NCBI RefSeq assembly: GCF_006345805.1
Contig: NC_042999.1
Location: 66,712,001 to 66,776,000, forward strand
Direction: 5' to 3'
Source of the DNA: Octopus sinensis
Taxonomy: Eukaryota
Length of the DNA stretch: 64,000 bases
Within the stretch, counting starts at the first letter, position 1. Each line of letters starts with the position of its first letter. A program made the position numbers and the translations under genes. Below the pieces are notes generated by a model. That model searched no databases and was not told the DNA's origin. It worked only from the letters and a program-made list of their open reading frames with translations. This document shows, in pieces, positions 4,639 through 60,735 of the stretch.

Positions 4639-4808
4639 TCAGTGACGACAACTGTTTAAACACATTATATATTTCATAAGATTTTCTTGTTTCGAATATG
4701 AACTATAGCACCCATATCGACATTTGCAGTGCTCTCGGAAACACGACATCCAGTTGGTTTTCTCACCGTGTCCATGCGGACAATAAGGAGGACAGTCCAC
4801 GTTAACGC
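4639..4808 (-). CDS. CRP1 mature-peptide exon (terminal coding exon) of a secreted 8-Cys peptide; (G)VNVDCPPYCPHGHGEKTNWMSCFREHCKCRYGCYSSYSKQENLMKYIMCLNSCRH*
   Basis: Acceptor ctaattttAG (4810-4809), phase 1, open frame to TGA at 4641-4639, AATAAA ~48 nt downstream. Same 8-Cys framework and REHCKCRYxCY core as the exons at 41255, 50327 and 60542. Missed by the ORF track because it has no in-frame ATG before the motif. Confidence 0.85.
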
Positions 4809-5593
4809 CTAAAATTAGTAAATAATAAAATTTTTCTTTAATAACATTATATGATATTTAAAAACGAAGATGAAGATGCATTGTACTCATATGAAGATTA
4901 CTACATTAATTTCTTTGAACGTGTTTCTGCTAGACGGGTCAGCTTTCAACGTGGCCTCCATTTAAAGCAATTTTCTGTCAACGCATATATTTCTATCAAC
5001 GCATATATTTCTCTTTAAATTTCTTAATATCTCCGTATATCCTTCACCCATTATCCATACCTATTTTTCATTTGAACTCCATAATTTTGATTTTATTATT
5101 GACGACACAAAATTAATTAATTTAGCATTTTCCTTTTTGATTCTAATTGCTCTAATTACAATTTGGATGAATACCATGGGGCAGTTTACAAACAACGATA
5201 AGTTTCTGTGATATTGTCACCAAGATTTTTTATAAACTATACAACTGATAGACGTTTATTCCAAGCGAATAATTTACTGAGTCGTAACTTTATCTCAACA
5301 ACAGTGATCAATATATTACAAACGCCAATTGATGGTTTTCAGGGAATTTTTTGTTTTCCTCGAATGTAATCACACAACTTGAAATGTTCTTAATGTACAT
5401 ATACGCAGGCACAGGGTCTCAAATAGCATAATCCAAAGTTTAAAGTCTCTGAGAAAACAGAAGGGGGAAATGTAATCTAGAGAGTAGCAGATCTAATAAC
5501 GTAATATCCAATAAATAGGTTAAGGGAAGGAGTAAATGTCTCAAAGAAACATCATGGTGATAACATCTGTTTCGGTGATATCATCGTGAAAAA

Positions 5594-6289
5594 GGATCTT
5601 TTCGGTTTGAACGGCAGATTTTTAAAATAATTTCCATGTAACTAAAAAATTTTAAACTTCGTATACTGGTAGAATGTGTTTATAAAATATCTTTTTCTCT
5701 TGGCTTTCTTGAGAAAATTCTGTAGTTTGTAAGATATTTGTAATATATTTTCTTCAATTTCTGCACTTTAAACCAATCAATGACGTCTATTGAGGTGAAA
5801 ATGATTCCTGCCGTAGAGGGTAAACAACATTTCCTGGAAGTGTCATATGAAAATGTCACCCATAATTATGACCCTAGTATCGATCTATTGCATTTCAATC
5901 TGTTTTAGGGTTAGGGTTATAGTTAGAGTTAGTAGGGTTAGTTAGGGGTAGTTAGGGTTAGGGTTAGGGGTGGGCGGAAGGGTATGTTTTTTCTTCATAA
6001 ATGCAAATAAACCCAATCTGTTTCTTAAACGAGGGACATTTTCATATAACACCGCCAGAAAATGTCTACGGTAGAGAATGTTTTCACTTCACTAGACGTC
6101 ATTGATTGGTTGAAATTGCCGAAATTGAAGAAAATATATTACAAATATCTTACAAACTACAGAATTTTCTCAAGAAAGCCAAGAGAAATAGATGTTTTAT
6201 AAACACATTCTACCAGTATACGAAGTTTAAATTTTTTTTAGTTACATGGAAATTATTTTAAAAATCTGCCGTTCAAACCGAAAAGATCC
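5594..6289. mobile_element. MITE/foldback element with ~200 bp TIRs and internal degenerate (TTAGGG)n, in CRP1 intron
   Basis: TIRs GGATCTTTTCGGTTTGAACGG... (5594-~5790) and its reverse complement (~6087-6289). Direct repeat GTGAAAAA at 5586-5593 and 6290-6297 is an 8-bp TSD (9 bp if the end is shifted by one), compatible with Mutator/hAT-like elements. Confidence 0.88.
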
Positions 6290-7181
6290 GTGAAAAAATG
6301 AACAAACGATAGCATGAGATCTGATACATTTAGAACTGTTTGAAAAGTAGTTCATACTGGAGGTCTTTGCGGATGGAAATAAAGAAGCCCTGTTATAAAA
6401 TGTATTACATCAGTTCTGATACTGCATAGACATGTTGGCAACGGATGCATAAGAATGAATATATTCTTCTTAGCATGTGTAACACTATATCAGAAGGATC
6501 ACTCTAACTTAGTAAATCAAGTTCGCGGTGATGTGTAGTGTGTGTATGTGTGTGTGCGCGCATGTATGCGTGCGTTTGTGTGTGTGTGTATGCATGTCTT
6601 TGTGTCTGTGTGTCTGTGCATTACTTTGTGAGTGCATGTGTTTCAGAATGTTATGTTTAGTTCTACGTGTATTACTTACTTAAGTGTTAGATAATCACGA
6701 TTATCAAAACTAAGTATGACCTAGACGAAAAACCAGTTATTGTGCGTGGCCAACGAAAGGATAGATCTAATCAATGTGGTCGAATGCAATGGAGGGAATT
6801 GTAGCAGAATAGATTTAAGGCATTATTGGTGAGATAAAACAGTTCAAAATGTAAAGCGAAATGTGGTTGGAGCACACATGAATAGGAAAAAAGAATAGTG
6901 ATGAGAACAAACTGAACTGAAGGGATTGATTAAGGATTATATTGAGATATTTTTATTTATAAAAGGAATGTCATATACAGGAAATCTGATAACAGAACTT
7001 TCTTGTGGGAATTATGGTTCACATATATCGAGATACACAGAGAGGTAATTCTCGGGAAAATTGATTCTAGATATTTATAAACATATTTCACCTAAATTAG
7101 ATTTAGATGCACAATTAATCACCAACGTCATTAGACAGGGGTTGAAAGACTTTTTAACGAATGGAATAACAATTTTCCTAC

Positions 7182-7242
7182 CTTCGGTCAGAGAAATCGT
7201 CGAGTATATTGCCAAGATGATGAGAAAGAATGTAGAATTCAT
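7182..7242 (-). CDS. CRP1 signal-peptide exon (MNSTFFLIILAIYSTISLTE/G); spliced product 76 aa
   Basis: ATG at 7242, hydrophobic core, donor GAAG|GTAGG at 7182/7181 (phase 1, matches the 4808 acceptor), upstream acceptor AAAG|GTTCAAT at 7250/7249. Homologous to signal exons at 22474, 29991, 48381 and 58590. Confidence 0.85.
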
Positions 7243-7409
7243 ATTGAACCTTTAAAATCTATAAATGCAAACATACATACACATATATAAACAGATATTC
7301 AAACATAGAATGACTTATATGCAAGCATAGGCATTTATGTTTGTATGTCCTTAAATCATTTAAAATGTTTTAGCCCGAAGGTCGCAACCATGCTGGAGCA
7401 CCACCACAT

Positions 7410-7909: not shown

Positions 7910-9048
7910 ATAAGTTCAGCAAAATTTAGATTCAAATGAATATGGTACTTAAGTTAGATGCACCAGAATTTTGAATGGTGTTATCCATATAAATCCATGG
8001 GGTGATTATAATCAAAATAAGCAACAAGAATATCTTCGGTAATTTGGTACGATCCTTTCACGCTACATCATTTTATTAAATATTGTAAGTATTACAACAG
8101 TTTTAAAATGTTGAGCAATCATCAGCAATTTATAGAGGTTTTCCTTTAATACATAATTTTCATATTAACTGACAACATAATAGAAAAGGTAGACATATAG
8201 ACAAATATGTCGATTTGAATTTTAAGAACATGAAGGTAGTAGAGTTTATGTTCTGACTGAAGAATATTCTAAAGTTATTTTGAACTGCTAAACGGTTGGG
8301 AAGTATAATTAGTTGAAAGGAGAGAAAAGAGATTTTCTATTTATAGAAATAGGGGTGAAATAAATGTCAGAAGTTATTCATAAAGAAATTCAAGTAGAGA
8401 GGGGGTTATAATACCCTAGAAGCTATTTACTATTATTTGGCAAACAGATTTTCTATCAAGAAAACAAGGTCAATGTCAGATGGTCACAATGACCACCTAT
8501 ATACCAAAAAGTTATAGAGAATACAGAGATCCCTTTATACTTATATACATAAGTTTATACTTAGCTGGTAGGTGTTGATTATTTTGATACGTTGGATTAA
8601 AGGAGAAATTATAAATCTAATATTTATTCATTTTGGAGAAAAATCTATCATTTATAATGAGTAGGTATAATACTTAATAAACTGAGGACAAAAGTCTTAT
8701 TAATAAAGTGAATATATTAGGGGTCAAATATATATATTGGAAGAATAGTAACCAAGATGAATAATATTCTTAGGTTTAGTAGAAGGCGATTTATTTTTAT
8801 GAAGAGAAGTAATCAAGATGAGTAAATTACTCAGATTTAGTAGATAGAGAATTGTTATTAAGGAATTAAATTATAGAATCTGTTAGACATAGTATTTACT
8901 ATCCGCGGAGGAAAGCTAATTAGTTAGGTAAAAATATCTTGGGTTAATGATATATTAAGAAATGGAAGTGAGGTAATCAACATGAACTGAGTAGTTTCTT
9001 TAGGGACATAGGATTTATACTATTTAATATAGGAGATTATAAAAAAAA
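7910..9048 (+). mobile_element. Inverted partial copy of the 5' part of the Penelope-like element
   Basis: 8007-9048 is the reverse complement of ~14367-15383 with scattered substitutions. Confidence 0.8.
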
Positions 9049-13100: not shown

Positions 13101-13228
13101 AACTCTGTCGTGTCTGTGAATATATTCCTTCTTAGCCAGGACTGGGCAGCCAGAGATAATATGATTTATTGTTTCTTGTCCATCTCCACATATTCTGCAG
13201 TTACTTGATATATTTCTTTTCATTACAT
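10150..13228 (-). mobile_element. R4/Dong-clade non-LTR retrotransposon (RT + CCHC + restriction-like endonuclease), degraded
   Basis: RT N-terminal PEWLTKGKTILIPK..NYRPITCLPTMYK (12070-12363), WLRCSGLKAETEGFLVAAQDQ (10758-11006), CRICGDGQETINHIISGCP zinc knuckle, KANRPDIVV endonuclease motif, C-terminal IPIIVGALG..QKIALLGTTHILRR. Flanked by TAA repeats. Confidence 0.9.
11025..11119. repeat. (TTC)n microsatellite inside the LINE
   Basis: Directly visible; source of poly-K/poly-L/poly-F ORFs. Confidence 0.95.
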
Positions 13229-18164: not shown

Positions 18165-18220
18165 TTTATAGTCGGGTTTAACACATAGTCCCACATCGCT
18201 GCAGACCTCGATTAAATTCA

Positions 18221-18302
18221 GGCGACTCGCTGATGAAGCTGACCTTAGCAAACATATTCTGTGTTTTGCTAGAAAGAAGCAGAAACCGCGGTACGAGTTG
18301 TT
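18221..18302 (+). ncRNA. Type I hammerhead ribozyme (minimal, palindromic helix III), copy 1
   Basis: Helix I GGCGACTCG/CGAGTTGTT (9 bp including G-U pairs), core CTGATGA (18230-18236), helix II GCT/AGC with inner TAGCAAA/TTTGCTA stem, GAAA (18282-18285), helix III ACC-GC-GGT. Predicted cleavage after GTA at 18293. Confidence 0.8.
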
Positions 18303-18666
18303 AAAGTTATCGGTAAACGTTTTTGATTTTCACTCTCGATAAATTCATCCCCTTTTTGTGTTCCCAGCACTCGGCATCTTTATTTAGGAGCCCTTAATTG
18401 TATAACTACATGAATAATATTTTTCTATATGAATAATATTTTTTGTCTTATGACTAATTCGTCTTTTGTGCTGGGCACCTGGTAGTAAATAATATTACTA
18501 CCCTTCTGTTTATATTCGCATACTACATGATGAATTTATTCGTAAAATTCTTCCCGGCATGCCCGTGTAAATTTTGGTCTGCGCGCAGAGATTTGAAAAG
18601 TTAAGATCTGCTAGTAGTCGGGTTTAACACATAGTCCCACATCGCTGCAGACCTCGATTAAATTCA

Positions 18667-18748
18667 GGCGACTCGCTGATGAAGCTGGCCTTAGCAAACA
18701 TATTCTGTGTTTTGCTAGAAAGAAGCAGAAACCGCGGTACGAGTTGTT
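18667..18748 (+). ncRNA. Type I hammerhead ribozyme, copy 2
   Basis: Same motif as copy 1 with one loop substitution; predicted cleavage after 18739. Confidence 0.8.
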
Positions 18749-18977
18749 AAAGTTATCGGTAAACGTTTTTGATTTTCACTCTCGATAAATTCATCCCCTT
18801 TTTGTGTTCCCAGCACTCGGCATCTTTATTTAGGAGCCCTTAATGTATAACTACATGAATAATATTTTTCTATATGAATAATATTTTTGTCTTATGACTA
18901 ATTCGTCTTTTGTGCTGGGCACCTGGTAGTAAATAATATTACTACCCTTCTTGATTATATATATATATATAATATAT

Positions 18978-19394: not shown

Positions 19395-19703
19395 ATGTAG
19401 ATATACATATGCAGATAGGAAAAATGAAACTTACTGGTCAGTGTTTCTTCTTACATGATACGTAATGGAACAATGTTCTTATATAGCAACCATACGCTTA
19501 GTTGTCACATGTATAACACGTTCCGGGTTGTTTATCACTTGTTTATTTCAATGAAAGTTTTATTATAAACCTTGAAAATAGTAATTATTGAGATCACATT
19601 TGATTTCTACCTCGTGCGAAGTGTGACGTTTCCAGGCCAGAATACCAAGGTGAAGGAGAAATACCATTACATAGAGACATATCTACACATGCACGTGCAC
19701 ACA

Positions 19704-22413: not shown

Positions 22414-22474
22414 CTTCGGTCAAGGGGATCGTCATGTATATTCCCAAGATGGTGAGAAAGAATGTAGAATTCAT
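22414..22474 (-). pseudogene. CRP2 signal-peptide exon remnant (MNSTFFLTILGIYMTIPLTE)
   Basis: Homologous to the CRP1 signal exon, but the donor reads GAAG|CTAGG (GT to CT). Homologous intron sequence continues to ~20700, then no mature exon is found. Confidence 0.8.
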
Positions 22475-29930: not shown

Positions 29931-29991
29931 CTTTCGTCAAGGCACTCATCACGTATATTCTCAAGATGAGTTGAAAGGATGTAGAATTCGT
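29931..29991 (-). pseudogene. CRP3 signal-peptide exon remnant (start codon ACG; TNSTSFQLILRIYVMSALTK)
   Basis: Exact 61-nt homolog with intact acceptor (CAG, 30001-29999) and donor (GTAAG), but ATG to ACG and polar substitutions in the hydrophobic core. No mature exon found downstream. Confidence 0.78.
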
Positions 29992-36546: not shown

Positions 36547-36577
<31 letters not shown>

Positions 36578-41254: not shown

Positions 41255-41451
41255 TTATTTTGGATATGGACAAGCCTTGGCACACTTTACATACTGGTAT
41301 AATATTCCTCTGCGGAAATATGTATAATAGCAATTATATCGACATTTGCAGTGCTCCTCTCGATAACACTTCTCCATAGAATTATAAGAAAGAGCAATAT
41401 CCTTGCTCTTAAGCTCAGCCTTGCAATCATATCGACATGCCAGTTCACCGG
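41255..41451 (-). CDS. CRP4 orphan mature-peptide exon; (A)GELACRYDCKAELKSKDIALSYNSMEKCYREEHCKCRYNCYYTYFRRGILYQYVKCAKACPYPK*
   Basis: Intact acceptor ctaattttAG (41453-41452), phase 1, 8 Cys, TAA at 41257-41255. Flanks 40740-41645 are an inverted copy of the CRP5 flanks. No signal exon found before the gap. Confidence 0.75.
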
Positions 41452-44788: not shown

Positions 44789-44888
44789 NNNNNNNNNNNN
44801 NNNNNNNNNNNNNNNNNNNNNNNNNNNNNNNNNNNNNNNNNNNNNNNNNNNNNNNNNNNNNNNNNNNNNNNNNNNNNNNNNNNNNNNN
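44789..44888. other. Assembly gap (100 N, probably an unknown-size placeholder)
   Basis: Run of exactly 100 N. Confidence 0.99.
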
Positions 44889-45895
44889 CAAGTATCACTG
44901 GATACCTGGAGCCAGCCATTTTCAAAAAGTCAGGGAAACTCACTTCACCCGCGGCCACTGGGGTCCATAGAGTCAAAGTAATCTTTGCACCCTCCCAACT
45001 GACTGCAGGCGTCACCTTCACGTCTGAGAGTCTGGGCCTACTATCTCACAGGCCCCACCGGATGGCATCTGCGATCCACCCCGCTTCGGTGCCCGGGGAC
45101 AGCCCACATACCCAAGTTCGTATCACCTTCTTCCCACTTAATGTGGAAGAAACAAAATTTCTTCGCCTTGCAGGGGCTGGCTAGCCACACCACCAGCTTC
45201 CTCGGGGGAGTCAAACAGCAGCCACACCGTGGATATTTGACTCTCCTGGCTATAAAGTATTTTTAGCTTGAAAACACCTTGCCAGTTCTTTTTCTATGAT
45301 ACCCCTATCGCAGGGGGCGATGGCATGAAGCGACCTAGAATAGATCCGTATTACCACCGTTCTCCTCTCAAGGCTTTCAATCCATTACTTAGGTGGGACA
45401 ACCTCCCACTCTAAGGCACGTTTTGTATTTGTCATGTTAAAAATCAGTTCAAAAGGAGAAAGAAAGTCCAAATAAATTAAGAAGAAGTCCAAAAAGAAAT
45501 AAACAAGTCAGTCCAAAAATGAATAAAAAATAAAATCCAAAAGAAACGTGAAAACAGTTCCAAAAGAAAAAAAATACAGAAGGATAGTGAAAAGAAAAAC
45601 AGTTCATACAGCGAACATCAATGACCAACAGGTACTCCTGGCCAACTTCGTAGGTTCAATGGTAATCCAACAAGTTTCAATGGCAAAGTCCAATACGGTC
45701 GAGCGAGGATACGCCCACATTTTTTTCCAATACAACAGAACAACAAACAGCTGTCCCGACAGCAGGCACAATTACCCCGGAAATAGGCGAAATTCATCAA
45801 CAAACAAACAATTACTATTTGACAAATTACACCCAGCTCAAACGAAAACAAAACCACCTAGCTCGACGACCTTATGCCGCTGTTCTTTTTTTCTT
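44889..45895 (-). mobile_element. 5' UTR/ORF1 part of an L1/Tx1-like LINE, cut by the gap (copy 1)
   Basis: Near-identical to 55207-56210. Confidence 0.5.
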
Positions 45896-47342
45896 TCAGT
45901 TAAATATTGGATGGAGCCAGCACACTCACGTCCACCTCGGTTCCCTGTAATAAGCAACACCAACGCGCATGTGCGGGAAGCAAGCTACTTACCGCACAGC
46001 CACTCTTACGCTTATATTTGTAACGTTGTATTTGTATTTGTCATGTTAAAAATCAGAGCCAATCTTACGCCTATATTTATTTATTCGCATTACAAAAATT
46101 TTACATTATAATATTTTCTGTAAGTCAACTATAGCAAAGATTTTATACCAAGACATCAAGGACGACATCAAATTTTCTATATAAGTGTGTACCTTAAATG
46201 ACTTCGATTACTCTGTATGTTTTAAGGAATTACATTCTCTCTCATACGCACACACATACATAAAAAGATGTATGCATATGTATTCATCTATGTGTACATG
46301 AAGGATGTGTATGTGTGTGAGACAGAGAGAGACCGAGCGAGTGCCGCTTACACATACATGACAAGACATATCTTCACTCACGCAGTCTCTCTCTCTCTCT
46401 CATTCCCTGTCTCACACGCAGGTCCATTTCACATACACGTACATACCCCCACACACACACGCCCATTTCACATACATGCATATACCCACACACACACACG
46501 TCCATTCCACATACACGTACATACATCTTTCTCTTTCTCCTATCTTTCACTTTCTGCTCTCACTTCAAAGCAAACGTCGTGGTTTCACTTTCCCTTCTCT
46601 TTCAATTTCAGCTTTCTTCAAAGCATAAAGAAATAATTTTTGAAAAGGAACTGAGTTGCCAATTTTGACGAGTGGAATATCAAAAATTCAGTAATATTTT
46701 GGCCAGTAAAGTACCTTATTTGCATTTACATATTTGCATTACAAAAATTTAACATCTGTCTATAATTCAAGTATCCTAAACGAAATTGTATACCAAGACG
46801 ACGACGACGTCACATTTTCTATATGAGTGTGTGCCTTAAAAGACGTCCATTTCTCTATAAATTATGAGGAAATACAATCACTCACTTTCTCACATGCAAA
46901 CGCAGACACACAGAAAGATAATGTGTGTGAGAGAAATAAAGAGAAAGTGCGAGAGCGGGAGAAAGGTAGTGAAGACCACTTACACATACATGCAAAAGAT
47001 TACATACATGAAAACACACATTTCATTCATTCTCCCTCTCTTCCATACGGACACACACACGCATGCGCACACACACGTCTATTTCATATGCAAGTAGATA
47101 CATCTTTCACTTTCTCCTCCCTTTGCATTTCTGCTCCCAGTTGAAATCAAATGTCGCGTTTTCACTCTCTCCTCTTTTTCAATTTCTACTCTCTTCAAAG
47201 CATAAAGATATTAAAAAAATTCATACGGAAATTAAAGAACAATCATACGATCTACCATATGAAACACTCAACAACATTCCTGCTTCAAAAGAAAGGCTGC
47301 CGTAAAATATAATACTTTGGCGTACACACGCACGCACACACA

Positions 47343-47383
<41 letters not shown>

Positions 47384-47909
47384 CACACACACACACACAC
47401 ACTGCGTGAAACTTTTCTATATATTATGTTATTTCTTGCTATGTGCACGCGCAAAATTACAGCCGAAATACAATTGAAATCATGTATTCTATTCTGTAAT
47501 TCGTGAATTCTCTCTCTCTGTATATAGTTACATACATACTTAGAAACGCACGTATGCTTGGGCACATGCACTAATCTTACAAATGTGTGTGTGTGTTTGT
47601 GTTTGTGCGCGTGTGTATCTGTGTGTTGCGTTTGTGTGCATGTGTGTGTGTGTTTGTGTGTGTGCGCGTGTGTGTGCGTGTATATGTATCTCTCTATGTA
47701 GTGGTGTTTTCCTTTTTCTTTGAAAATGCATGCAAGGAGATAATGGCCAGGATCTTTACCTGTAAACGTGACACTTGACACAAGGAAGAAAGTAAGTGTA
47801 ATCTCAATAATTACTATTTTGAAGGTTTATAATAAAACTTTCATTGAAATAAACAAGCGATAAACAACTCGGAATGTATTGTATTTGTGACAGCTTGGCG
47901 TAGGATTCT

Positions 47910-47966
47910 TATATAAGAGCATCGTTACCTTCTGCACCACATATGAAGAAGCACTTACTGGTAAGT
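47910..47966 (+). promoter_or_regulatory. CRP5 TATA box, putative short non-coding exon 1 and donor
   Basis: TATATAA at 47910-47916; consensus donor CTG|GTAAGT at 47960/47961; pairs with acceptor ttttaCAG|GTTCAAC-ATG at 48373/48374. Confidence 0.65.
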
Positions 47967-48206
47967 TTCATTCTTCCTATCTTCACATCTATTTATATCT
48001 ATCTATCTCTCTATATATCTTACTGCTTGTCTCCGTCTGTCTCTATATATCTATCTTTGTATCTATTTGTCTATCTATCTATCTTCATCCATCATTTTCT
48101 TTAGTCATTAGACTGCGATCCTGGCAGTTTAACACGAACAGTTTGCCCACACTATTGAGCATCGTACTAACTACTTCTTTTAGGTAAGTTTAATGTTTCT
48201 GGATAT

Positions 48207-48308
<102 letters not shown>

Positions 48309-48380
48309 TATAAATATACATATATATGTGGACATATACATACAATATATGTTGGTATTTATAAATTTTACAGGTTCAAC

Positions 48381-48444
48381 ATGAATTCTACACTTTCTCT
48401 CATCTTCTTCTTGGGAATATACATGATGATTGCCCTGACCGAAG
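48381..48444 (+). CDS. CRP5 signal-peptide exon ([22 protein letters not shown]); spliced product 85 aa
   Basis: ATG at 48381, hydrophobic core, donor GAAG|GTAAG at 48444/48445 (phase 1). Confidence 0.88.
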
Positions 48445-50326
48445 GTAAGAAAACTGGTCACCCATTCGTTAAATGATTTTTCGACCTTTGTCTATTTGCG
48501 CATGCAAATCTAGTTTTAGTGCAGACTTTTCATAACTGTCTAGAATCAATTTTCCTGAGAATTACAATTCATATATTATGCTTTCTTAAAAATTTCCCTA
48601 TATATGGGATTCATTTTATAGATAAGATATATCTTAATATAATCCTTAATCAATCCCTTCAGTTCAGTTTGTTCCCTTCACTCTTATTGCTTCCTTTTCA
48701 TGTCTGCTTCAAAAGACCACATCTCAATATTCACTTCGAGCAATTTCATCTCACCAATAATATTCCATTCGACGAAATTCCTTAGCTCTATCCTTTCATT
48801 GGTCCGAATCACACAATTACCGATTGTTCCTTTAGGTTGGACTTAGTTCTCCATAAGTGCGATTGTGATTATCACACGGCTATGTAAATACCACATTTGG
48901 AACTAAACATAACACTGAAACACATAATAAACGCAATCGCACACATACATTACACATACGCTCACACGACATACACCACACAAGTATACTAAGCAAAAAT
49001 TCTTCTTTTATTAAAACTCTTAATGCAACACGGAACCAAAATCTGCCTCTTCTGATTAAATGCAGATGAATGTTGGTTGCGGTGCCCTTTTCATGACTCT
49101 CAAAACCCGTCGTTCATTGCTACATTGAGCGTTATTCATTTTGTCTTTACTGGAATGCGTAACGAATAATCGATTATTACAGGCCAAGATTCCATTGCCA
49201 ATTGCAGTATCACATATATGATGGAAACCAAAATAAAGAATAAGTTTTTTTCATGATTTTCAGCATTTCCTCATTCTCAGAGACTATTTCCAAAGATATA
49301 ATCACTGGAAACTCTTATTCTAAGAAGAAACACATTCCCTCTTATACACAATTGAAAACATATCAGTCCAATATCAAAAACGATGTAATGCATTTTATAA
49401 GAATGCTTAATCATTTCCTTCAGTAGAAACCTCAAGAACGCTGTCCTATCTTTCAAACAGTTCTAAACAAATCTCATGAAATCACTGAGTACCATACATT
49501 TGTAACGTTTGTCGATATTACTATCAAGAAGCATGACCTATCTCACTGACATCATCCTAATAAGTGTCATCAGTATGATCTCTCTTTTACAGATTCAATC
49601 CTTCTCTTAACCTATTTATTCAATATTTCGTTATTTGAGCTGCTACTCTCTAGAATACACTTTACATTTTAGTTTTCTCAGAATCGTGAAAATTTGGAAT
49701 GTCCTATTTGAGATACCGAGTCTGTGTAGATGTACATTAAGAACGTCTCTTCCACCTGTATTATCACCGTCACTTAAAACATAACGTTCTATGAAAATCA
49801 TCAATTGGTTTTTCTAATATATTGATCACTGTCGTTGAAAGTGAGTAAATATTTTCGCAGGAGTAAACGTCTCGCATTTTTATTTTAAATAAAAGCGATG
49901 GTGTCTCTATTACAGCAATATCATGTTGAGTGTAAATCGCTTCATGGAATTCATCCAAATTGTCAAATAATTTAGAGCACTTAAATACATGAAAAACAGA
50001 ACAATTAAAATCATAGCAGTCAAATCAACTAATTTTGTGTCGTCTACAATAAAGATAAAAGTAGGAAGTTCAAACGACAAATTGGTATGGGTAATAGGTG
50101 ACACAATAATGGAGTTATTTAGGATATTATAGAGAGATATATGCGTTGAGAGTAAATTGTTTTAAACGGTGGACACGTTGAACGTTGACCTGCGCAGTAG
50201 AAACAGCGTAAAGCAGGTTTAAAGAAAGAGATGAATCTAATGAATGTAGTAAGATGCAATGTATCTTTAAATTCGTTTTTAAATATAAAATGCTATTTAA
50301 TGACTTTTCGTATTTTCTAATTTTAG

Positions 50327-50520
50327 CCGGTGAAGTGGCATGTCGATATGATTGCCAGCCTGAGCTTACGAGCAAGAATATTGCTCTTACTTATGAATCT
50401 ATGGAGAAGTGTCGTCGAGAGCACTGCAAATGTCGATATAATTGCTATTATAAATATTTCCTCAGACGAATGATATACCACTATGTAAAGTGTGCCAGGG
50501 CTTGTCCAGATCCAAAATAA
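50327..50520 (+). CDS. CRP5 mature-peptide exon; (A)GEVACRYDCQPELTSKNIALTYESMEKCRREHCKCRYNCYYKYFLRRMIYHYVKCARACPDPK*
   Basis: Acceptor ttttctaattttAG (50325-50326), phase 1, 8 Cys, TAA at 50518-50520, AATAAA at 50516 and 50751. Confidence 0.88.
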
Positions 50521-52886
50521 AAAGGAAAGCAAAGGAAAACCAATGCAGCAGCCTGTACAGAGATTGAACCGCTTGCAAAGTTGATGTTGTACTACATACA
50601 TAATTGTCAAAATGATTCAGTAAAACGATGCTACGCACTTATTGGCCACATCGTCAAATGATTAACGGTTTCTGTCTATTTACAATGAGCAAACTAGTAG
50701 ATAATATTTCTGTGAATAACCATAGAGCGGCGTTGTATTTTAAAAGATTGAATAAAGAAAAATTACAAACATATCATCTGGTCTATTGGTGCTCTATCTT
50801 TGCTCATGTCCTGCATATGTGAACCTCCTTCAGCACTCTCGGTTTCACCTGGTAATGCTCGTTCATAACCTGTCGCTTTTTAATAGGTTATTGGAAATTC
50901 GCTTAAAATGAATAAACTATAGATGTATACAACCCTAGTTTGTTGTTGCTTTCTCCAGGCAGCTGGGATTTGAACTCAAGGCGCAATGAATCGAAAAATA
51001 TGCATTAAAATATATCTGCCGACGCGTCATTGTTTCTGTTACACTTCCACCTTTAGAGGAACACGAAATGAAGTATTTGCTCAAGAAATGAGGGTGTCAC
51101 CCAATCTAACCATCGTACATGTGCATCGCTGATCACTGGGAAACGTACCTTCGCACGTTAGGGATACTTACTGTGTAATAGACTGTGATGACGGCTTAAG
51201 CGGCTCGGCTGACAAACTATAAAGTTAAAATAGTAGTTATTACCAGAATAAAATCGTTCAATTTTATCTTTTATCGATATACTTAATATTTAAAATAGCT
51301 GTTAAAATAGCAGTTATAGAACAGTTAAAATTGGAGAATACAGACTCTAAGATTTCTTGGACCCTTAGAGTAACCTTTTTCTTTTCAGCTAAGTGAAATG
51401 AAGCTGGCGGTAAATTTTTTAGATGAATTTGTTTGAAGTCAAAGCCTTCTAAAACGTTCCCCGTTTCTTTAAGTGATGAAACTGAAATTACCTTCAGCCA
51501 AATTAACTTCTATTGACCACACTTTCATTTTCCGTTATTCTTCTGCAACATTTGAAAGCGATTGACGTAATTGTGAAATGTGAGGCTATATAAAATCTGC
51601 AAATAATATATTCTTTTATTATTTTGTAAATTTGTCATTAACAGGTGCTTCATCCTCCCAAATTTTGATATAAATAAGGAGACCCCCCCCCCACTTTGTT
51701 GATGCCCTATTCGGCAAAGATAATGTGTGATGTTCTAAAAACTGAATTTGTTTTTTGCTACAATCTCTTCAGTGTATTCCATGATCAGAATATTCAATAA
51801 TAACAGTAACGTCATTTATACACGAAGCACTTGTTTTGACAATTTGAATATAAATATTTTTCTGAACAAATTTTGATGTACCGAATGTATTGTTTGAAGA
51901 AATAAATAAAACTCTAAGACACAAAATCTGTAGAAACAGCTTCGAAGATCGGTAAATAACCTTAGAAACGCAAAAATTTGGCCAGCAAGCCGCTGCAAAT
52001 TATCGAGACTCTTAACACTAAAATTCTGGCTACCTGTGCCATTAAGTTGCATGACCCCTGATAACAGATACGGTCTTTATAAGAAAGATCATCAGCAGCA
52101 GCATCAGTAGCATCATCATCATCGCAAAAAGTGTTGACAGACTTTAGCAAAATTAAGGTGTTTGCATTCAGCGTCTATACTCATAATACATTGCCATGAA
52201 GAATGTTATAATTTTGCAGAAGCTATGGCAAATAACTTTAAATTCTTCAAAACCAGAGTTCCATCAAAGAAATTATTTTCTCCAGGATAATCGGTTATTT
52301 TTTTCTTTACTGGATAATGATCTATACCACTTTAAATCTGTGTGATGTGACAGAAAAATGTCTGTAATTTTATCCTCAATTCGGTGTGGAGACACACACA
52401 CTCACACACACGCACATACACACACACACTGGCACACACACACAAGCGTGCGCGCGAACTTCAATTTCAAAGCGGATCAACGGTTCATCTGGAGTCATAA
52501 GCTCCTGAGGCCGGTTTACCAAAGTGAAGAGAGAGTTCCAGGCAGGGGGAGGTAATAAGGGATTTCTTCTAACATTCTTATACAGAGAAACTTATCTCAT
52601 TAAAAAATAAATAAATAAATAAATACAGTGATTATCTCCCTTATTCGGGAAGAAATCCCTTATTACCTCCCCCTGCCTGGAACTTCTTTTTGCACTTCGT
52701 AATGAAGGCATGACACGATGTAGGTAAAGAAATTTGAGAAATTGAAAAGTTTACACGAAACCGGTTTTTCTCCAAAAACTATGTTACTATACACAAAATT
52801 TCCTAACATTTTTCTAACATAACGAATTAAATATATTCTTAAACCTTATAAAACAAGCCTTCTGTAGTTTTTTCAATCTTTTCTTT

Positions 52887-52930
<44 letters not shown>

Positions 52931-53004
52931 CATACATATAAATATATATATATGTGTGTGGTGTATGTGTGTCTATATATATATATATATATGTGTGTAA
53001 ATGT

Positions 53005-53051
<47 letters not shown>

Positions 53052-53416
53052 CTCTCTCTCTCTATATATATATATAAACATTTACTTGTATATAACAATA
53101 CAAGGCTAACAATAACTTTTAGAATAGTTAAGAACTGAACGTATTCTCACGGAAGGGTCGTAGGTTATAGCTCAGCACCACTCAATATTGTAAATACGTG
53201 GTCTCGCTTATATCAAACACACATATATATATGGTGATTACATATGATTTCTTTATTGCAATTAATTTGACATGCAGCTGTTTCCGACAGTTATCAGAAG
53301 AAACATTTGTAAGTAAAATTTACTGCAACAAAGAAAAATTATGTAGTGACAATTAACTAATGCTCGTCTCAATATAATATAAATGCGTATATATACATGT
53401 ATATATACATATATAC

Positions 53417-53501
<85 letters not shown>

Positions 53502-53584
53502 ATCGAAACAAGAAAACACAGCAACGCGAGGACGTGGAACAAATAAAGTATTATTGGACGCTCATGCAAATGGGAAGAAGGAGG

Positions 53585-53620
53585 GTTCAACGTTTCGAGC
53601 GGAGCTCTTCGTCGGAAACA
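53585..53620 (-). ncRNA. Minimal hammerhead ribozyme-like motif (core U4 to C)
   Basis: GTTT-CCGACGA-A-GAGC-tcc-GCTC-GAAA-CGTT-GAAC; helices I and II pair and helix III is the AACGTT palindrome. Confidence 0.5.
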
Positions 53621-53769
53621 TAGGAAAAGGAAAGATCCCGAGAAGGGACGACAGAGGAAAAAATCGGCGAAACAAATCGCTGGCGGTACTCACGAGGTCA
53701 CATAATGTATATATATTTATAAATGTATGTGTGTTTGTGTGTGTGTATATGCATATACACACACACATA

Positions 53770-53804
<35 letters not shown>

Positions 53805-53848
53805 AAAGCTAAATTCTCTCCAGAGATCTGCGTACAAGTTGTACGTAG

Positions 53849-54124
53849 CCACTTCAACATGTGTCTCCGTTCGAACGTACTCTTACTCTACGGCGATTTT
53901 TAAAAATTGCGAGCTGAAGCGAGTTACGGCCATCTTTGGTAGAAGAAAACCCAAAACCAGGACTGTTCTACTGGTCCCGTTACTTGATGGTGGTAGCGGT
54001 TGGTTCCCCTGCTCACAATTTATCTGATGTAGCTCTGCCTCAAAAACAAGCCGGAAGAAATGTCCTCTTCGTGTCAAAATTATTGCGGTAGAGTCCATTC
54101 AAACGGACAGACATGTAGAAGTGG
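53849..54124. mobile_element. MITE-like element with ~34 bp imperfect TIRs
   Basis: ccacttcaacatgtgtctccgttcgaacgtactc versus the reverse complement at 54091-54124; a related partial copy lies at ~42177-42420. Confidence 0.5.
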
Positions 54125-54142
54125 ATTCGAATAATACTTGCT

Positions 54143-54173
<31 letters not shown>

Positions 54174-54489
54174 CGATGTGTTTCTTTCAGTTTCCGTCTA
54201 CCAAATTCACTCACAAGGCTTCGGTCGGTCCGACGCTATAGTTGAAAACACTTGCCCAAGATGGCTCGCAGTTGGACTGAACCCAGAACAATGTAATTCG
54301 TAAGCAAGCCACAAGGGCAGTACACAGAGTAGCTGCGGGTTGGCCAAGGACATTATTGTGATGAGGGTGATAACGTTAAAAATGAATAAACCCCTCGAAA
54401 TCCCTGTTCAATTTAAAATTCAAGAATAAAAATTTAATATACAGTAATAAGATACAATTGTAAAAATTTCAAGAACAAGAATTCATTTT

Positions 54490-56210
54490 TCATTCATCTT
54501 CCTCGTCCGGGCCCCCAAGTAAGTTTCCTGCCGCCTGCAGGAAAGCCTGCATTGGCAGGCCCGGACGGAGGGACACAAAATCGTTATTAGTGCAGGTCCT
54601 CTTGGCCTCAATTAATTCTTCTTGGGGGATGGCCCCCGTGAAACCTGCGGAGGCCAACATGGACCGTCTATACAGACCGAGTCGTATCGTTCTCGGTCTA
54701 AAAGGCTATCCAAAAACATCTCACAAGGCCTACCCTTGACGTAGAAAATGAAAAGTTCCACCTCTTTCTCACGGGGAGGTGTCTCAACCTCCTCTGTCAG
54801 TGGCACAATTCCCACTGACAGATCCTCTCGCTCCGGAGGCACACTTCCCACCGGAGGATCATCAGTTTCGATCGGCGGCGCAGCACCATTCGCCGACTGC
54901 GTTCTTTTTCTTTTCTTCTTTCTTTACCCGTTTGCGGGAGTCGGAGCCTCCACCGGCACCCCGGGGGGTCCCTCTCCTCTCCCACAACCTGCACCTCACC
55001 TGGTGGGCAACTACCGTTGCTCACCTTCCTCTTCCTCTTTGTCGAGACTGACCCGTCAACAACCTCCTCCACCTCTCACTGCAATGGGAGAGCGGAGGGC
55101 ATCTTCACCTTTCCCTGCTCCGGGGCCTTACTACAGACCCTTGGGCAGCCCTTTTTAATGTAGGCCAACTCCAAGCACGAGTGAAACTTGAGGTGGGGAT
55201 GACCCTCAAGTATCACTGGATACCTGGAGCCAGCCATTTTCATAAAGTCAGGGAAACTCATTTCACCCGCGGCCACTGGGGTCCATAGGGTCAAAGTAAC
55301 CTTTGCACCCTCCCAGTTGACTGCAGGCGTCACCTTCACGTCTGAGAGTCTGGGCCTACTATCCCACAGACCCAAACGGATGGCATCTGCGATCCACCCC
55401 GCTTCGGTGCCCGCGGACAGCCCACATACCCAAGTTCGTATCAACTTCTTCCCACTTATTGTGGGAAGAAACAAAATTTCTTCGCCTTGCAGGGGCTGGC
55501 TAGCCACACCACCAGCTTCCTCAGGGGAGTCAAACAGCAGCCACACCGTGGATATTTGACTCTCCTGGCTATAAAGTATTTTTTAGCTTGAAAACACCTT
55601 GCCAGTTCATTTTCTATGATACCCCTATCGCAGGGGGCGATGGCATGAAGCGACCTAGAATAGATCCGTATTACCACCGTTCTTCTCTCAAGGCTTTCAA
55701 TCCATTACTTAGGTGGGACAACCTCCCACTCTAAGGCACGTTTTGTATTTGTCATGTTAAAAATCAGTTCAAAAGGAGAAAGAAAGTCCAAATAAATTAA
55801 GAAGAAGTCCAAAAAGAAATAAACAAGTCAGTCCAAAAATGTATAAAAAATAAAAATCCAAAAGAAACGTGAAAACAGTTCCAAAAGAAAAAAATACAGA
55901 AGGATAGTGAAAAGAAAAACAGTTCACACAGCGAACATCAATGACCAACAGGTACTCCTGGCCAACTTCGTAGGTTCAATGGTAATCCAACAAGTTTCAA
56001 TGGCAAAGTCCAATACGGTCGAGCGAGGATACGCCCACATTTTTTTCCAATACAACAGAACAACAAACAGCTGTCCCGACAGCAGGCACAATTGCCCCGG
56101 AAATAGGCGAAATTTATCAACAAACAAACAATTACTATTTGACAAATTACACCCAGCTCAAACGAAAACAAAACCACCTAGCTCGACGACCTTATGCCGC
56201 TGTTGTTCTT
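54490..56210 (-). mobile_element. 5' UTR/ORF1 (gag-like) part of an L1/Tx1-like LINE, degraded (copy 2)
   Basis: GC-rich frameshifted ORF pieces (55456-55677, 55076-55546, 54797-55072, 54612-54851) with a degenerate zinc knuckle (FHSCLELAYIKKGCP) and a low-complexity charged tail. Confidence 0.5.
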
Positions 56211-57557
56211 TTTTCTTTCAGTTAAATATTGGATGGAGCCAACACACTCACGTCCACCTCGGTTCCCTGTAACAAGCAACACCAACGCGCATGTGCGGGA
56301 AGCAAGCTACTTACCACACAGCCACTCTTACGCCTATATTTATTTATTCGCATTACAAAAATTTTACATTATAATATTTTCTGAAAGTCAACTATAGCAA
56401 AGATTTTATACCAAGACATCAACGACGACATCAAATATTCTATATAAGTGTGTACCTTAAATGACTTCGATTACTCTGTATGTTTTAAGGAATTACATTC
56501 TCTCTCATACGCACACGCACACACATATATAAAAAGATGCATATGTATTCATCTATGTAAACATGAAGGATGTGTATGTGTGTGAGACAGAGAGAGACCG
56601 AGCGAGTGCCGCTTACACATACATGACAAGACATATCTTCACTCACGCAGTCTCTCACTCCCTCTCTCATTCCCTGTCTCACACGCAGGTCCATTTCACA
56701 TACATGCATATACCCACACACACACACGTCCATTCCACATACACGTACATACATCTTTCTCTTTCTCCTATCTTTCACTTTCTGCTCTCACTTCAAAGCA
56801 AACGTCATGGTTTCACTTTCTCTTCTCTTTCAATTTCAGCTTTCTTCAAAGCATAAAGAAATAATTTTTGAAAAGGAACTGAGTTGCCAATTTTGACGAG
56901 TGGAATATCAAAAATTCAGTAATATTTTGGGGCCAGTAAAGTACCTTATTTGCATTTACATATTTGCATTACAAAAATTTAACATCTGTCTATAATTCAA
57001 GTATCCTAAACGAAATTGTATACCAAGACGACGACGACGTCACATTTTATAGAGTGTTGTGCCTTAAAAGACGTCCATTCTCTATAAATTATGAGGAAAT
57101 ACAATCACTCACTTCCTCACATGCAAACGCAGACACACAGAAAGATAATGTGTGTGAGAGAAATAAAGAGAAAGTGCGAGAGCGGGAGAAAGGTAGTGAA
57201 GACCACTTACACATACATGCAAAAGATTACATACATGAAATCACACATTTCATTCATTCTCCCTCTCTTTCATACGGACACACACACGCATGCGCACACA
57301 CACGTCTATTTCATATGCAAGTACATACATCTTTCACTTTCCCCTCCCTTTGCATTTCTGCTCCCATTTCAAATCATATGTCGCGTTTTCACTCTCTCCT
57401 CTTTTTCAATTTCTACTCTCTTCAAAGCATAAAGATATTAAAAAAATTCATACGGAAATTAAAGAACAATCATACCATCTACCATATGGAACACTCAACA
57501 ACATTCCTGCTTCAAAAGAAAGGCTGCCGTAAAATATCATAATTTGGCGTACACGCG

Positions 57558-57604
<47 letters not shown>

Positions 57605-58114
57605 ACTGCGTGAAACTTTTTTATGTATTATGTTATTTCTTGCTATGTGCACGCGCAAAATTACAGCCGAAATACAATTGAAATCATGTATTTCTATTCT
57701 GTAATTCGTGAATTCTCTCTCTCTGTATATAGTTACATACATACTTAGAAACGCACGTATGCTTGGGCACATGCACTAATCTTACAAATGTGTGTGTGTG
57801 TTTGTGTTTGTGCGCGTGTGTGCCTGTGTGTTGCGTTTGTGTGCATGTGTGTGTGTGTTTGTGTGTGTGCGCGTGTGTGCGCGTGTATATGTATCTCTCT
57901 ATGTAGAGGTGTTTTCCTTTTTCTTTGAAAATGCATGCAAGGAGATAATGGCCAGGATCTTTACCTGTAAACGTGACACTTGACACAAGGAAGAAAGTAA
58001 GTGTAATCTCAATAATTACTATTTTGAAGGTTTATAATAAAACTTTCATTGAAATAAACAAGCGATAAACAACTCGGAATGTATTGTATTTGTGACAGCT
58101 TGGCGTAGGATTCT

Positions 58115-58171
58115 TATATAAGAGCATTGTTACCTTCTGCACCACATATGAAAAAGCACTTACTGGTAAGT
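58115..58171 (+). promoter_or_regulatory. CRP6 TATA box, putative short non-coding exon 1 and donor
   Basis: TATATAA at 58115-58121; CTG|GTAAGT at 58165/58166; acceptor CAG|G at 58582/58583. Confidence 0.65.
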
Positions 58172-58589
58172 TTCATTCTTCCTATCTTCACATCTATTTA
58201 TATCTATCTATCTCTCTATATATCTTACTGCTTGTCTCCGTCTGTCTCTATATATCTATCTTCGTATCTATTTGTCTATCTATCTATCTTCATCCATCAT
58301 TTTCTTTAGTCATTAGACTGCGATCCTGGCAGTTTAACACGAACAGTTTGCCCACACTATTGAGCATCGTACTAACTGCCTCCTTTTAGTTAAGTTTAAT
58401 GTTTGTTGATATTTATGTATATATATTTATATGCATATATAAATATACATATATATATATATATATATTTATATGCATATATAATATATATATATGTGGA
58501 CATATATATATGCATATATAAATATACATATATATGTGGACATATACATACAAATATATGTTGGTATTTATAAATTTTACAGGTTCAAC

Positions 58590-58653
58590 ATGAATTCTAC
58601 ACTTTCTCTCATCTTCTTCTTGGGAATATACATGATGATTGCCCTGACCGAAG
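58590..58653 (+). CDS. CRP6 signal-peptide exon (identical to CRP5)
   Basis: ATG at 58590, donor GAAG|GTAAG at 58653/58654. Confidence 0.88.
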
Positions 58654-60541
58654 GTAAGAAAACTGGTCACCCATTCGTTAAATGATTTTTCGACCTTTGT
58701 CTATTTGCGCATGCAAATCTAGTTTTAGTGCAGACTTTTCATAACTGTCTAGAATCAATTTTCCTGAGAATTACAATTCATACATTATGCTTTCTTAAAA
58801 AATTCCCTATATATGAGATTCATTTTATAGATAAGATATATCTTAATATAATCCTTAATCAATCCCTTCAGTTCAGTTTGTTCCCTTCACTCTTATTGCT
58901 TCCTTTTCATGTCTGCTTCAAAAGACCACATCTCAATATTCACTTCGAGCAATTTCATCTCACCAATAATATTCCATTCGACGAAATTCCTTAGCTCTAT
59001 CCTTTCATTGGTCCGAATCACACAATTACCGATTGTTCCTTAGGTTGGACTTAGTTCTCCATAAGTGCGATTGTGATTATCACACGGCTATGTAAATACC
59101 ACATTTGGAACTAAACATAACACTGAAACACATAATAAACGCAATCGCACACATACATTACACATACGCTCACACGACATACACCACACAAGTATACTAA
59201 GCAAAAATTCTTCTTTTATTAAAACTCTTAATGCAACACGGAACCAAAATGTGCCTCTTCTGATTAAATGCAGATGAATGTTGGTTGCGGTGCCCTTTTC
59301 ATGACTCTCCAAAACCCGTCGTTCATTGCTACATTGAGCGTTATTCATTTTGTCTTTACTGGAATGCGTAACGAATGATCGATTATTACAGGCCAAGATT
59401 CCATTGCCAATTGCAGTATCACATATATGATGGAAACCAAAATAAAGAATAAGTTTTTTTCATGATTTTCAGCATTTCCTCATTCTCAGAGACTATTTCC
59501 AAAGATATAATCACTGGAAACTTTTATTCTAAGAAGAAACACATTCCCTCTTATACACAATTGAAAACATATCAGTCCAATATCAAAAACGATGTAATGC
59601 ATTTTATAAGAATGCTTAATCATTTCCTTCAGTAGAAACCTCAAGAACGCTGTTCTATCTGTCAAACAGTTCTAAATGAATCTCATGAAATCACTGGGTA
59701 CCATATATTTGTAACGTTTGTCGATATTACTATCAAGAAAGATGATATATCTTGCTGAAATCATCCTAATAAGTGTCATCAGTATGATCTCTCTTTTACA
59801 GTTTCAATCCTTCTCTTAACCTATTTATTCAATATTTCGTTATTTGAGCTGCTACTCTCTAGAATACACTTTACATTTTAGTTTTCTCAGAATCGTGAAA
59901 ATTTGGAATGTCCTATTTGAGATCCCGAGTCTGTGTAGATGTACATTAAGAACGTCTCTTCCACCTGTATTATCACCGTCACTTAAAACATAACGTTCTA
60001 TGAAAATCATCAATTGGTTTTTCTAATATATTGATCACTGTCGTGAATTGAAAGTAGTAAATATTTTCGCAGGAGTAAACGTCTCGCATTTTTATTTTAA
60101 ATAAAAGCGATGGTGTCTCTATTACAGCAATATCATGTTGAGTGTAAATCGCTTCATGGAATTCATCCAAATTGTCAAATAATTTAGAGCACTTAAATAC
60201 ATGAAAAACAGAACAATTAAAAAATACGTAGCAGTCAAATCAACTAATTTTGTGTCGTCTACAATAAAGATAAAAGTAGGAAGTTCAAACGACAAATTGG
60301 TATGGGTAATAGGTGACACAATAATGGAGTTATTTAGGATATTATAGAGAGATATATGCGTTGAGAGTAAATTGTTTTAAACGGTGGACACGTTGAACGT
60401 TGACCTGCGCAGTAGAAACAGCGTAAAGCAGGTTTAAAGAAAGAGATGAATCTAATGAATGTAGTAAGATGCAATGTATCTTTAAATTCGTTTTTAAATA
60501 TAAAATGCTATTTAATGACTTTTCGTATTTTCTAATTTTAG

Positions 60542-60735
60542 CCGGTGAAGTGGCATGTCGATATGATTGCAAGCCTGAGCTTACGAGCAAGAATATTGCT
60601 CTTACTTATGAATCTATGGAGAAGTGTCGTCGAGAGCACTGCAAATGTCGATATAATTGCTATTATAAATATTTCCACAGACGAATGATATACCACTATG
60701 TAAAGTGTGCCAGGGCTTGTCCAGATCCAAAATAA
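60542..60735 (+). CDS. CRP6 mature-peptide exon; (A)GEVACRYDCKPELTSKNIALTYESMEKCRREHCKCRYNCYYKYFHRRMIYHYVKCARACPDPK*
   Basis: Acceptor at 60540-60541, 8 Cys, TAA at 60733-60735; two nucleotide differences from CRP5. Confidence 0.88.

Follow-up and report, generated by a model that had tools for sequence, protein, structure and literature searches.

A probable single-locus family of secreted, helical, cysteine-rich peptides in Octopus

The 64,000-nucleotide stretch of Octopus sinensis DNA analysed here (the window; scaffold C3:66712001-66776000) carries part of a gene array that probably represents a multigene family confined to one locus and so far known only from Octopus, whose products would be secreted, basic, helical, cysteine-rich peptides. 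In the window are three intact genes (A1, A2, and B), an orphan mature exon (A3), and two signal exons that are dead; all are homologous. These elements had been described in an earlier note as an unrecognised family of small secreted peptides with eight cysteines (8-Cys). No named relative was found in Pfam, the PDB, or the literature, in agreement with that description, but the 8-Cys set proved to be only a subgroup of a larger family with four or five cysteines per peptide (4-Cys and 5-Cys members). For the analysis, 244 kb of sequence around the window was read for family members, and the genome of 2,719,151,902 bases in 13,516 scaffolds (2.72 Gb) was searched.

All nine exons that had been listed previously (five signal exons and four mature exons) are present in the window (Table 1). 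By tblastn within the window, the mature exons match each other with E-values of 1e-45 to 1e-9 and the signal exons with E-values of 2e-10 to 8e-3. The introns, which had also been claimed to be homologous, are 66-98% identical between the copies, and chance similarity is ruled out by these values taken together. All four mature exons have a TTTTAG acceptor, begin in phase 1, and are open in frame to the stop codon, and the signal exons of A1 and A2 both end in G/GTAAGA (the slash marks the splice site). The coding part of the gene B signal exon (7242-7182, minus strand) is intact, and intron 2 of this gene is 2373 nucleotides long. The spliced precursors were computed to be 85 (A1), 85 (A2, two residues different), and 76 (B) residues long, matching the expected range of 76-85. 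The reported phase-1 GT/AG junctions were observed in most copies, but the donor of the signal exon at 22474 is CT. Similarly, all five signal exons are homologous, but two of them are dead: the exon at 22474 has lost its donor and the exon at 29991 its start codon. The former is followed by a partial intron and has neither a mature exon nor a promoter, and the latter is followed by just ~700 nucleotides of intron and lacks a promoter module. A3 lies within a 937-bp partial duplicate (40710-41642) that, besides this exon and its 3' flank, includes just the final 190 nucleotides of the intron. With intact and dead copies standing side by side, the array has the birth-and-death character that had been ascribed to it.

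Exon 2 encodes a signal peptide of 20-21 residues ending in phase 1, and exon 3 encodes the whole mature peptide; the exons and splice sites confirm the architecture of a signal exon and a single cysteine-rich mature exon joined through a phase-1 intron. The N-termini are hydrophobic with small residues at positions -3 and -1 (T-E-A or T-E-G), after which signal cleavage is predicted by the -3/-1 rule. The framework C-x3-C-x12/18-C-x4/5-C-x-C-x3-C-x15-C-x3-C and the (R/Q)EHCKCRYxCY core are found in every 8-Cys copy, and the pattern proposed from the first inspection holds in all copies aligned. The products have masses of 3.9-7.9 kDa, and the mature peptides, of 34-65 residues in the intact members, are all basic (isoelectric point 8.2-9.1). 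The A-type mature peptides contain 8-10 Tyr and 13-14 Lys plus Arg residues.

The array runs past the window on both sides. Scanning of the surrounding locus with a signal-exon profile gave 14 copies, an intron-end/acceptor profile gave a matching series, and about 15 mature exons were found. The locus occupies ~205 kb and holds at least eight intact genes and at least eight relics. Across the whole genome, C3:66.61-66.80 Mb is the only region matched by signal-exon DNA, promoter DNA, or peptides. An additional 8-Cys gene (E) lies 7 kb to the right of the window, and its protein is identical to an O. vulgaris protein. To the left of the window are genes with the same signal exon and intron and far shorter mature exons, for example AENKCREKCMREHLENGNSIGRIAYLQCFYDKCSTYKVH, GKIICENKCKKEHMKPGYPQDFAGYLKCIFMKC, and DYMECRAICQKQYLTGGKSNDHTGFFKCLQDRCRCL. 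The core common to all members is C-x3-C-x18-C-x3/4-C, which matches the first four cysteines of the 8-Cys peptides; the latter therefore consist of a 4-Cys module and a second C-x3-C-x15-C-x3-C module, and are a derived sub-branch of a larger 4/5-Cys helical-hairpin family. An origin of module 2 by internal duplication of module 1 was considered from the A1 segments CRYDC and CRYNC, which share 14 of 15 nucleotides; the signal was marginal for A1 (shuffle p ~0.05) and not significant for E and B, and the duplication is retained only as a possible origin. Paralogue D, a 4-Cys member at window positions -21204 to -21392 (L020:8611-8796), is longer and has RRRRK after the last cysteine followed by a tail of 16 residues; this arrangement, absent from the other members, resembles a proprotein-convertase site and a C-terminal propeptide. 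An outlying signal-like exon (MNSTFCLVMLGLFIITAGAN) is situated outside the window at +93343 (locus L019) with its own promoter copy at +88236. The mature-exon candidate for it at +94407 (C-x12-C-x5-C-C) does not fit the family pattern and was left unassigned; the two exons may represent an additional branch that has diverged more strongly.

Table 1 Positions of family exons, promoter modules, and related features in the window.
Feature	Position	Strand	Remarks
Promoter module of paralogue C, distal part (GGAATGT...GTGACAGCTGG...)	1..42	-	nhmmer match 42..-60, promoter alignment
Gene B exon 3	4639..4808	-	Mature peptide (G)VNVDCPPYCPHGHGEKTNWMSCFREHCKCRYGCYSSYSKQENLMKYIMCLNSCRH and TGA stop; 8 Cys, short x12 loop
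Gene B exon 2	7182..7249	-	AAG acceptor, 7 nucleotides of 5' untranslated region, signal peptide MNSTFFLIILAIYSTISLTE, phase-1 donor G/GTAGGA
Promoter module and non-coding exon 1, presumably of gene B	19406..19525	-	TATATAAG at 19485-19478; exon end 19435/GTAAGTTTC
Dead signal exon (MNSTFFLTILGIYMTIPLTE)	22414..22474	-	ATG kept; donor GT changed to CT
Dead signal exon	29931..29991	-	ATG changed to ACG; donor GT kept
A3, orphan intact mature exon	41255..41451	-	GELACRYDCKAELKSKDIALSYNSMEKCYREEHCKCRYNCYYTYFRRGILYQYVKCAKACPYPK and stop; no signal exon of its own
Assembly gap	44789..44888		No exon spans it; flanks not continuous
Tandem unit of ~8.5 kb, two copies	44889..63920	+	44889-53254 (A1) and 55207-63920 (A2), 97.6% identical
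Gene A1 promoter module and non-coding exon 1	47870..47960	+	CGGAATGT, GTGACAGCT, TATATAAG at 47910-47917; exon end 47960/GTAAGT
Gene A1 exon 2	48374..48444	+	Acceptor ttttacag/GTTCAAC, ATG at 48381, 21-residue signal peptide, phase-1 donor
Gene A1 exon 3	50327..50520	+	Mature 8-Cys peptide (A)GEVACRYDCQPELTSKNIALTYESMEKCRREHCKCRYNCYYKYFLRRMIYHYVKCARACPDPK and TAA
Gene A2 promoter module and exon 1	58075..58165	+	TATA box at 58115-58122
Gene A2 exon 2	58583..58653	+	Signal exon identical to that of A1, ATG at 58590
Gene A2 exon 3	60542..60735	+	Mature peptide, ends in TAA; Q10K and L45H relative to A1

The family genes have three exons, and the earlier two-exon picture lacked a short upstream non-coding exon. 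Every signal exon is preceded by ttttacag/GTTCAAC-ATG, which is an acceptor. At a distance of 0.4-12 kb upstream is a conserved TATA promoter module consisting of CGGAATGT, GTGACAGCTGG, the invariant TATATAAG, about 40 nucleotides, and the exon-1 donor /GTAAGTTTC. With nhmmer, 11 copies of this promoter module were found, all of them within the locus; the rest of the genome has none. The O. vulgaris gene model P0002, from an annotation pipeline that drew on Iso-Seq and RNA-seq, uses precisely the predicted exon-1 donor and exon-2 acceptor. Judging from strand and order, the module at 19406-19525 presumably belongs to gene B, whose intron 1 would then be ~12 kb long and full of retroelement fragments. 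The TATA box, exons, and remainder of the 4-Cys paralogue C are located just left of the window. Upstream of the TATA box (e.g., 47870-47917), the paralogues keep a GGAATG word (TEAD/M-CAT-like) and a CAGCTG word (E-box), which could point to the cell type in which the family is expressed.

AlphaFold2 models were obtained for the mature A1 peptide (mean predicted local distance difference test score (pLDDT) 88, predicted template modelling score 0.64) and for the 5-Cys paralogue F (pLDDT 83). A1 was modelled with helices at residues 10-15, 22-32, 34-44, and 49-58, and paralogue F as a helix-loop-helix whose helices 2-15 and 23-33 carry the cysteine pairs; neither model has strands. In the A1 model, C35 and C39 are on helix 34-44, C55 is on helix 49-58, and C59 is just past the helix end. 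The position of the cysteine pairs on facing helices suggests C1-C4/C2-C3 stapling in each module. The 4/5-Cys members would accordingly be built as a single disulfide-pinned helix-loop-helix hairpin, and the 8-Cys members as the same hairpin plus a second CxxxC...CxxxC hairpin, with four helices in all. The helical, disulfide-stapled fold that had been guessed from the CxxxC motifs fits these all-alpha models, whereas the beta-sheet folds of defensins, macins, ICK (inhibitor cystine knot) peptides, and Kunitz domains do not.

Neither sequence nor fold searches linked the peptides to a named family. The three 8-Cys products (A1 and B precursors, A3 mature peptide) matched no Pfam family at E ≤ 10, and eight family precursors gave only single-member chance matches (MAGP, 0.03; BDV_G, 0.058). 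Among the candidates considered, defensins, macins, ShK, ICK knottins, Kunitz, saposin-like, and small Tim/CHCH proteins were rejected because their Pfam models did not match the family, which bears out the earlier statement that the spacing cannot be assigned to defensins, macins, ShK, ICK, or Kunitz. No PDB chain was matched at E ≤ 10 by phmmer or by profile hmmsearch. Foldseek, which has weak power for folds this small, found no PDB match for the A1 model and one chance match (E = 6.5) for the F model. The match to a known named family that the earlier note had wished to see sought was thus absent from Pfam, PDB, and Foldseek results alike. An HMMER scan of 1.84 billion protein representatives returned only the O. 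vulgaris models P0001-P0003, and the sole relatives in the databases are O. vulgaris entries annotated as 'Hypothetical predicted protein' (CAI9719436.1, CAI9719437.1, and CAI9719438.1). Literature searches by key words and by peptide strings (EHCKCRY, MNSTFFL, and others) yielded no description of such peptides in the open literature.

The hairpin itself is already a known structural kind (cysteine-stabilised alpha/alpha, CS-alpha/alpha; alpha-hairpinin). The CS-alpha/alpha motif is defined as Xn-C-X3-C-Xn-C-X3-C-Xn on two antiparallel helices, and the CxxxC...CxxxC helical hairpin is the scaffold of the scorpion kappa-KTx and Conus flf14/vil14a K+ channel blockers (PMC7191063). This motif is present in the second module (C-x3-C-x15-C-x3-C) of all 8-Cys members and in paralogues D and H, while the first module of most members deviates in that the second pair is C-x4-C or C-x5-C. 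Like kappa-hefutoxins, OmTx, flf14a-c/vil14a, and plant alpha-hairpinins, the octopus peptides are small, secreted by prediction, and often basic, with two CxxxC motifs; the motif is matched by the 4-Cys members (33-40 residues) and by the second half of each 8-Cys peptide, for both of which a helix-loop-helix is predicted. However, no sequence relation was found, the octopus loop is 15-18 residues long compared with ~10-13, and in the 8-Cys form a single chain of 63 residues contains two hairpins linked via C-x-C. We know of no such two-hairpin C-x-C arrangement in the CS-alpha/alpha group, and as far as we can tell the fused double hairpin has not been described previously. Neither gene structure nor origin is shared, so convergence most likely accounts for the resemblance. 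Twin-CX3C small Tim and twin-CX9C (CHCH) proteins are also helix-loop-helix hairpins with two disulfides between paired CxnC motifs. Unlike the octopus peptides, they are ancient, conserved proteins of the mitochondrial intermembrane space without a signal peptide, and their Pfam models gave no match. Mytilus MgCRP-I and other cysteine-rich families of molluscs, including cone snails, resemble the octopus array in their conserved signal, hypervariable mature peptide with invariant cysteines, and lineage-restricted expansion (PMC4558851). MgCRP-I has six cysteines in another pattern and a pre-pro region, whereas the octopus peptides lack a propeptide, have an all-helical predicted fold, and show no sequence similarity to it.

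Divergence within the array is concentrated in the mature exons. Between A1 and E, the identity is 91.8% in the signal exon and 95.2% in the intron but 75.1% in the mature exon (Fisher p = 2e-17), that is, the divergence is 4.8% in the intron and 24.9% in the mature exon. Between A1 and A3, the intron end (98.4%) and the 3' flank (95.7%) are more alike than the mature exon (90.7%), corresponding to 1.6-4.3% divergence in the flanks and 9.3% in the exon; the changes in this exon are 18 non-synonymous and 2 synonymous (ratio of non-synonymous to synonymous rates, dN/dS, 2.3; p = 0.002). A four-way alignment revealed a mosaic in which E resembles A up to the CKCRY core and B in the 3' untranslated region. 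Any two types are ~50% identical in the module-1 loop and the last helix and 70-90% in the flanks, and all cysteines are invariant across members despite the divergence of the mature exons. For O. sinensis and O. vulgaris orthologues, dN/dS rested on too few changes for significance; the A-type mature peptides of the two species differ by 4-5 of 63 residues. The array would grow and decay through tandem and inverted duplication, gene conversion, and exon loss, with the promoter, signal exon, and introns staying alike while the loops and last helix of the mature peptide may change fast with every cysteine kept. Such a conserved frame with a hypervariable surface, as read from the alignments, is the pattern usual for products that meet a changing outside target.

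The array was also compared with a gap-free region of O. vulgaris (OX597816.1:70217562-70269349; positions given as ov) that is colinear with the gap-side part of the window. O. vulgaris has the same array, including two tandem plus-strand A-type copies, and the A3 orphan is found in both species. The left flank of the assembly gap extends to ov 6102 at 99.2% identity, while the right flank (44889 onward) best matches ov 22479 onward (98.2%), which is the spacer before the second plus-strand A-type copy. Hence at least 5.7 kb, and possibly ~16 kb, is missing at the gap; no exon spans it, and reading frames are therefore unaffected. At this position O. vulgaris has a complete minus-strand gene, A4 (mature exon ov 7288-7100, signal exon 9262-9203, promoter 12632), oriented head to head with the first of the plus-strand A-type genes. 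In model P0003 of O. vulgaris, the signal exon of A4 is spliced to the mature exon A3 (MMNALTE-A-GELACRY...). A4 is the likely source of the signal exon of A3, so that A3 could serve as an alternative last exon for a gene hidden in the gap. The predicted acceptor (LTE-A-GE junction) recurs in three gene models of O. vulgaris, and the exon-1 donor in one of these. These models are otherwise mis-joined: P0001 has no signal exon, P0002 reads the signal exon of one gene out of frame and continues into the next gene, and P0003 proceeds after A3 into a retroelement-derived exon and then into gene B, which it reads out of frame. Genes of this family are missed or wrongly joined in the octopus annotations available at present.

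Several observations weigh against a family of secreted, helical, fast-evolving peptides. Disulfide pairing, secretion, and signal cleavage are all predictions. The AlphaFold models rest on thin alignments (6 sequences for mature A1 and 9 for paralogue F), and the model of A1 shows no helix at the first CxxxC (C5/C9). Gene conversion of the introns, as opposed to positive selection, could account for part of the exon-intron contrast, and the synonymous divergence of the A1/E exon is high as well (0.52). The exon excess between O. sinensis and O. vulgaris was not significant for the four A-type pairs, although in the same direction (p = 0.10-0.40), and paralogue E showed no excess between the species (p = 0.72). 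When 5.8 billion protein clusters were queried in a word-indexed search, the A1 precursor, a 4-Cys precursor, and the family profile returned only the O. vulgaris models P0001 and P0002 and no further open reading frame (ORF), whether derived from Logan or not. The protein search likewise returned no protein from the O. sinensis gene set for the genes of the window, and the O. vulgaris models, being chimeric, could be ab initio in part. In both A1 and A2, exon 1 has an ATG in a different frame from the peptide ORF (ATGAAGAAGCACTTACTG/GT; 47943-47960 and 58148-58165); if transcribed, this ATG would make an overlapping upstream ORF. It occurs only in these two genes, most other paralogues having ACG there, and it is ~30 nucleotides past the TATA box and so may sit at or before the transcription start.

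With regard to function, the sequence evidence points to secreted, stable, basic, fast-evolving peptides, which would be released from secretory cells and would bind a fast-changing outside target. Host defence would rank first among the conceivable roles, a signal between individuals or gametes second, and a salivary toxin third. A host-defence or antimicrobial role is the best single candidate, although we hold it only tentatively. A conspecific or reproductive signal is rated lower, and a salivary or venom toxin and some other role each slightly lower again; pheromone or reproductive roles are as compatible with the sequence evidence as a toxin or defence role. Somewhat less probable than the defence role taken by itself is the fuller proposal that the 8-Cys members embody a new disulfide framework, in which two CS-alpha/alpha hairpins fused via C-x-C form a four-helix, four-disulfide mini-protein that evolved within Octopus from a 4-Cys hairpin and is used as a fast-diversifying external effector, antimicrobial or channel-blocking. 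If true, this would define a new class of cephalopod defence or venom peptides with a new scaffold.

The alternative that comes closest is that the peptides are signals between individuals or gametes, either water-borne pheromones or ligands of sperm, egg, or reproductive tract, with sexual selection or species recognition driving their fast change. Aplysia attractin and the Euplotes pheromones are small, secreted, fast-evolving, lineage-restricted helical bundles with 3-5 disulfides and provide a precedent for helical disulfide-stapled peptides in such a role, but their cysteine spacing differs from that of the octopus peptides, and they gave no match in the PDB sequence search. Lineage restriction, rapid divergence of the mature peptide, and tandem expansion form the pattern of reproductive proteins, and expression limited to rarely sampled glands would explain the missing database ORFs. 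Nevertheless, the between-species exon excess is not significant, and a cationic amphipathic character is more typical of defence peptides; we regard signalling as rather improbable. Slightly less favoured, and in our judgement unlikely, are neurotoxins of the posterior salivary gland, i.e., hairpins that block ion channels of prey, for instance K+ channels through a Lys/Tyr dyad as in other CS-alpha/alpha toxins. The hairpin is the scaffold of kappa-KTx and Conus flf14/vil14a (PMC7191063), Lys, Arg, and Tyr are abundant in the A-type peptides, and the pairing of a conserved signal with a hypervariable mature exon is classic for toxin genes. On the other hand, the peptides have no propeptide and no sequence relation to known toxins in the Pfam and PDB searches, and the published cephalopod venom surveys found by literature search describe no such peptides. 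The absence of members among proteins from public octopus data, although salivary-gland transcriptomes exist, counts weakly in the same direction.

It is very improbable that the array is non-functional, whether decayed or never expressed, or that its tandem copies arose by misassembly. A large number of copies are plainly dead, the gap adjoins the duplicated unit, and the missing O. sinensis proteins and chimeric O. vulgaris models would be expected in that case; however, in eight copies the ATG, both splice sites, the open frame, all cysteines, and a TATA promoter have been preserved despite 25-45% nucleotide divergence of the exons. A3, unlike a pseudogene, has changed faster than its flanks in the exon and yet kept the frame and all cysteines. 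A1 and A2 lie in one gap-free stretch, and the independent O. vulgaris assembly has the same tandem pair; the duplication is therefore real. The idea that the exons are passengers or part of a transposon, raised by the many LINE (long interspersed nuclear element) and mariner fragments in the window, can be dismissed, because signal-exon DNA, promoter DNA, and peptide searches reveal one locus and no dispersed copies genome-wide, and the fragments are in introns and spacers, not in the exons of the repeat unit.

Very few secreted bioactive peptides of cephalopods are known at the sequence level. The locus offers at least eight intact, easily synthesised peptides graded from a 4-Cys single to an 8-Cys double hairpin under one promoter type, together with a sister-species comparison. 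It is suited to questions on how a gene family originates and diversifies within a genus, how a cysteine framework is extended, and what a fast-evolving helical scaffold targets. Should the peptides be neither expressed nor active, the array would be just another lineage-restricted set of small ORFs.

Some repeats in the window were also recorded. A 1-kb inverted repeat (8007-9047 and 14368-15383, 94% identical) brackets ~5 kb with reverse-transcriptase fragments (RVT_1, 12070-12453; zf-RVT, 12858-13232), and this is a retroelement insertion within the presumed intron 1 of gene B; one of its ORFs (13626-13964) serves as an exon in the chimeric model P0003. Between the dead exon at 29991 and A3 are a LINE-type fragment (35557-36633; zf-RVT, E = 3e-8) and a mariner-type fragment (37758-38090; Transposase_1, E = 8e-19). 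The segments 18169-18515 and 18615-18960 form a local tandem duplication with 98.6% identity. Microsatellites of the (CA)n, (TA)n, and (TCTA)n types are very abundant and give long spurious Cys- or Tyr-rich ORFs in six-frame scans.

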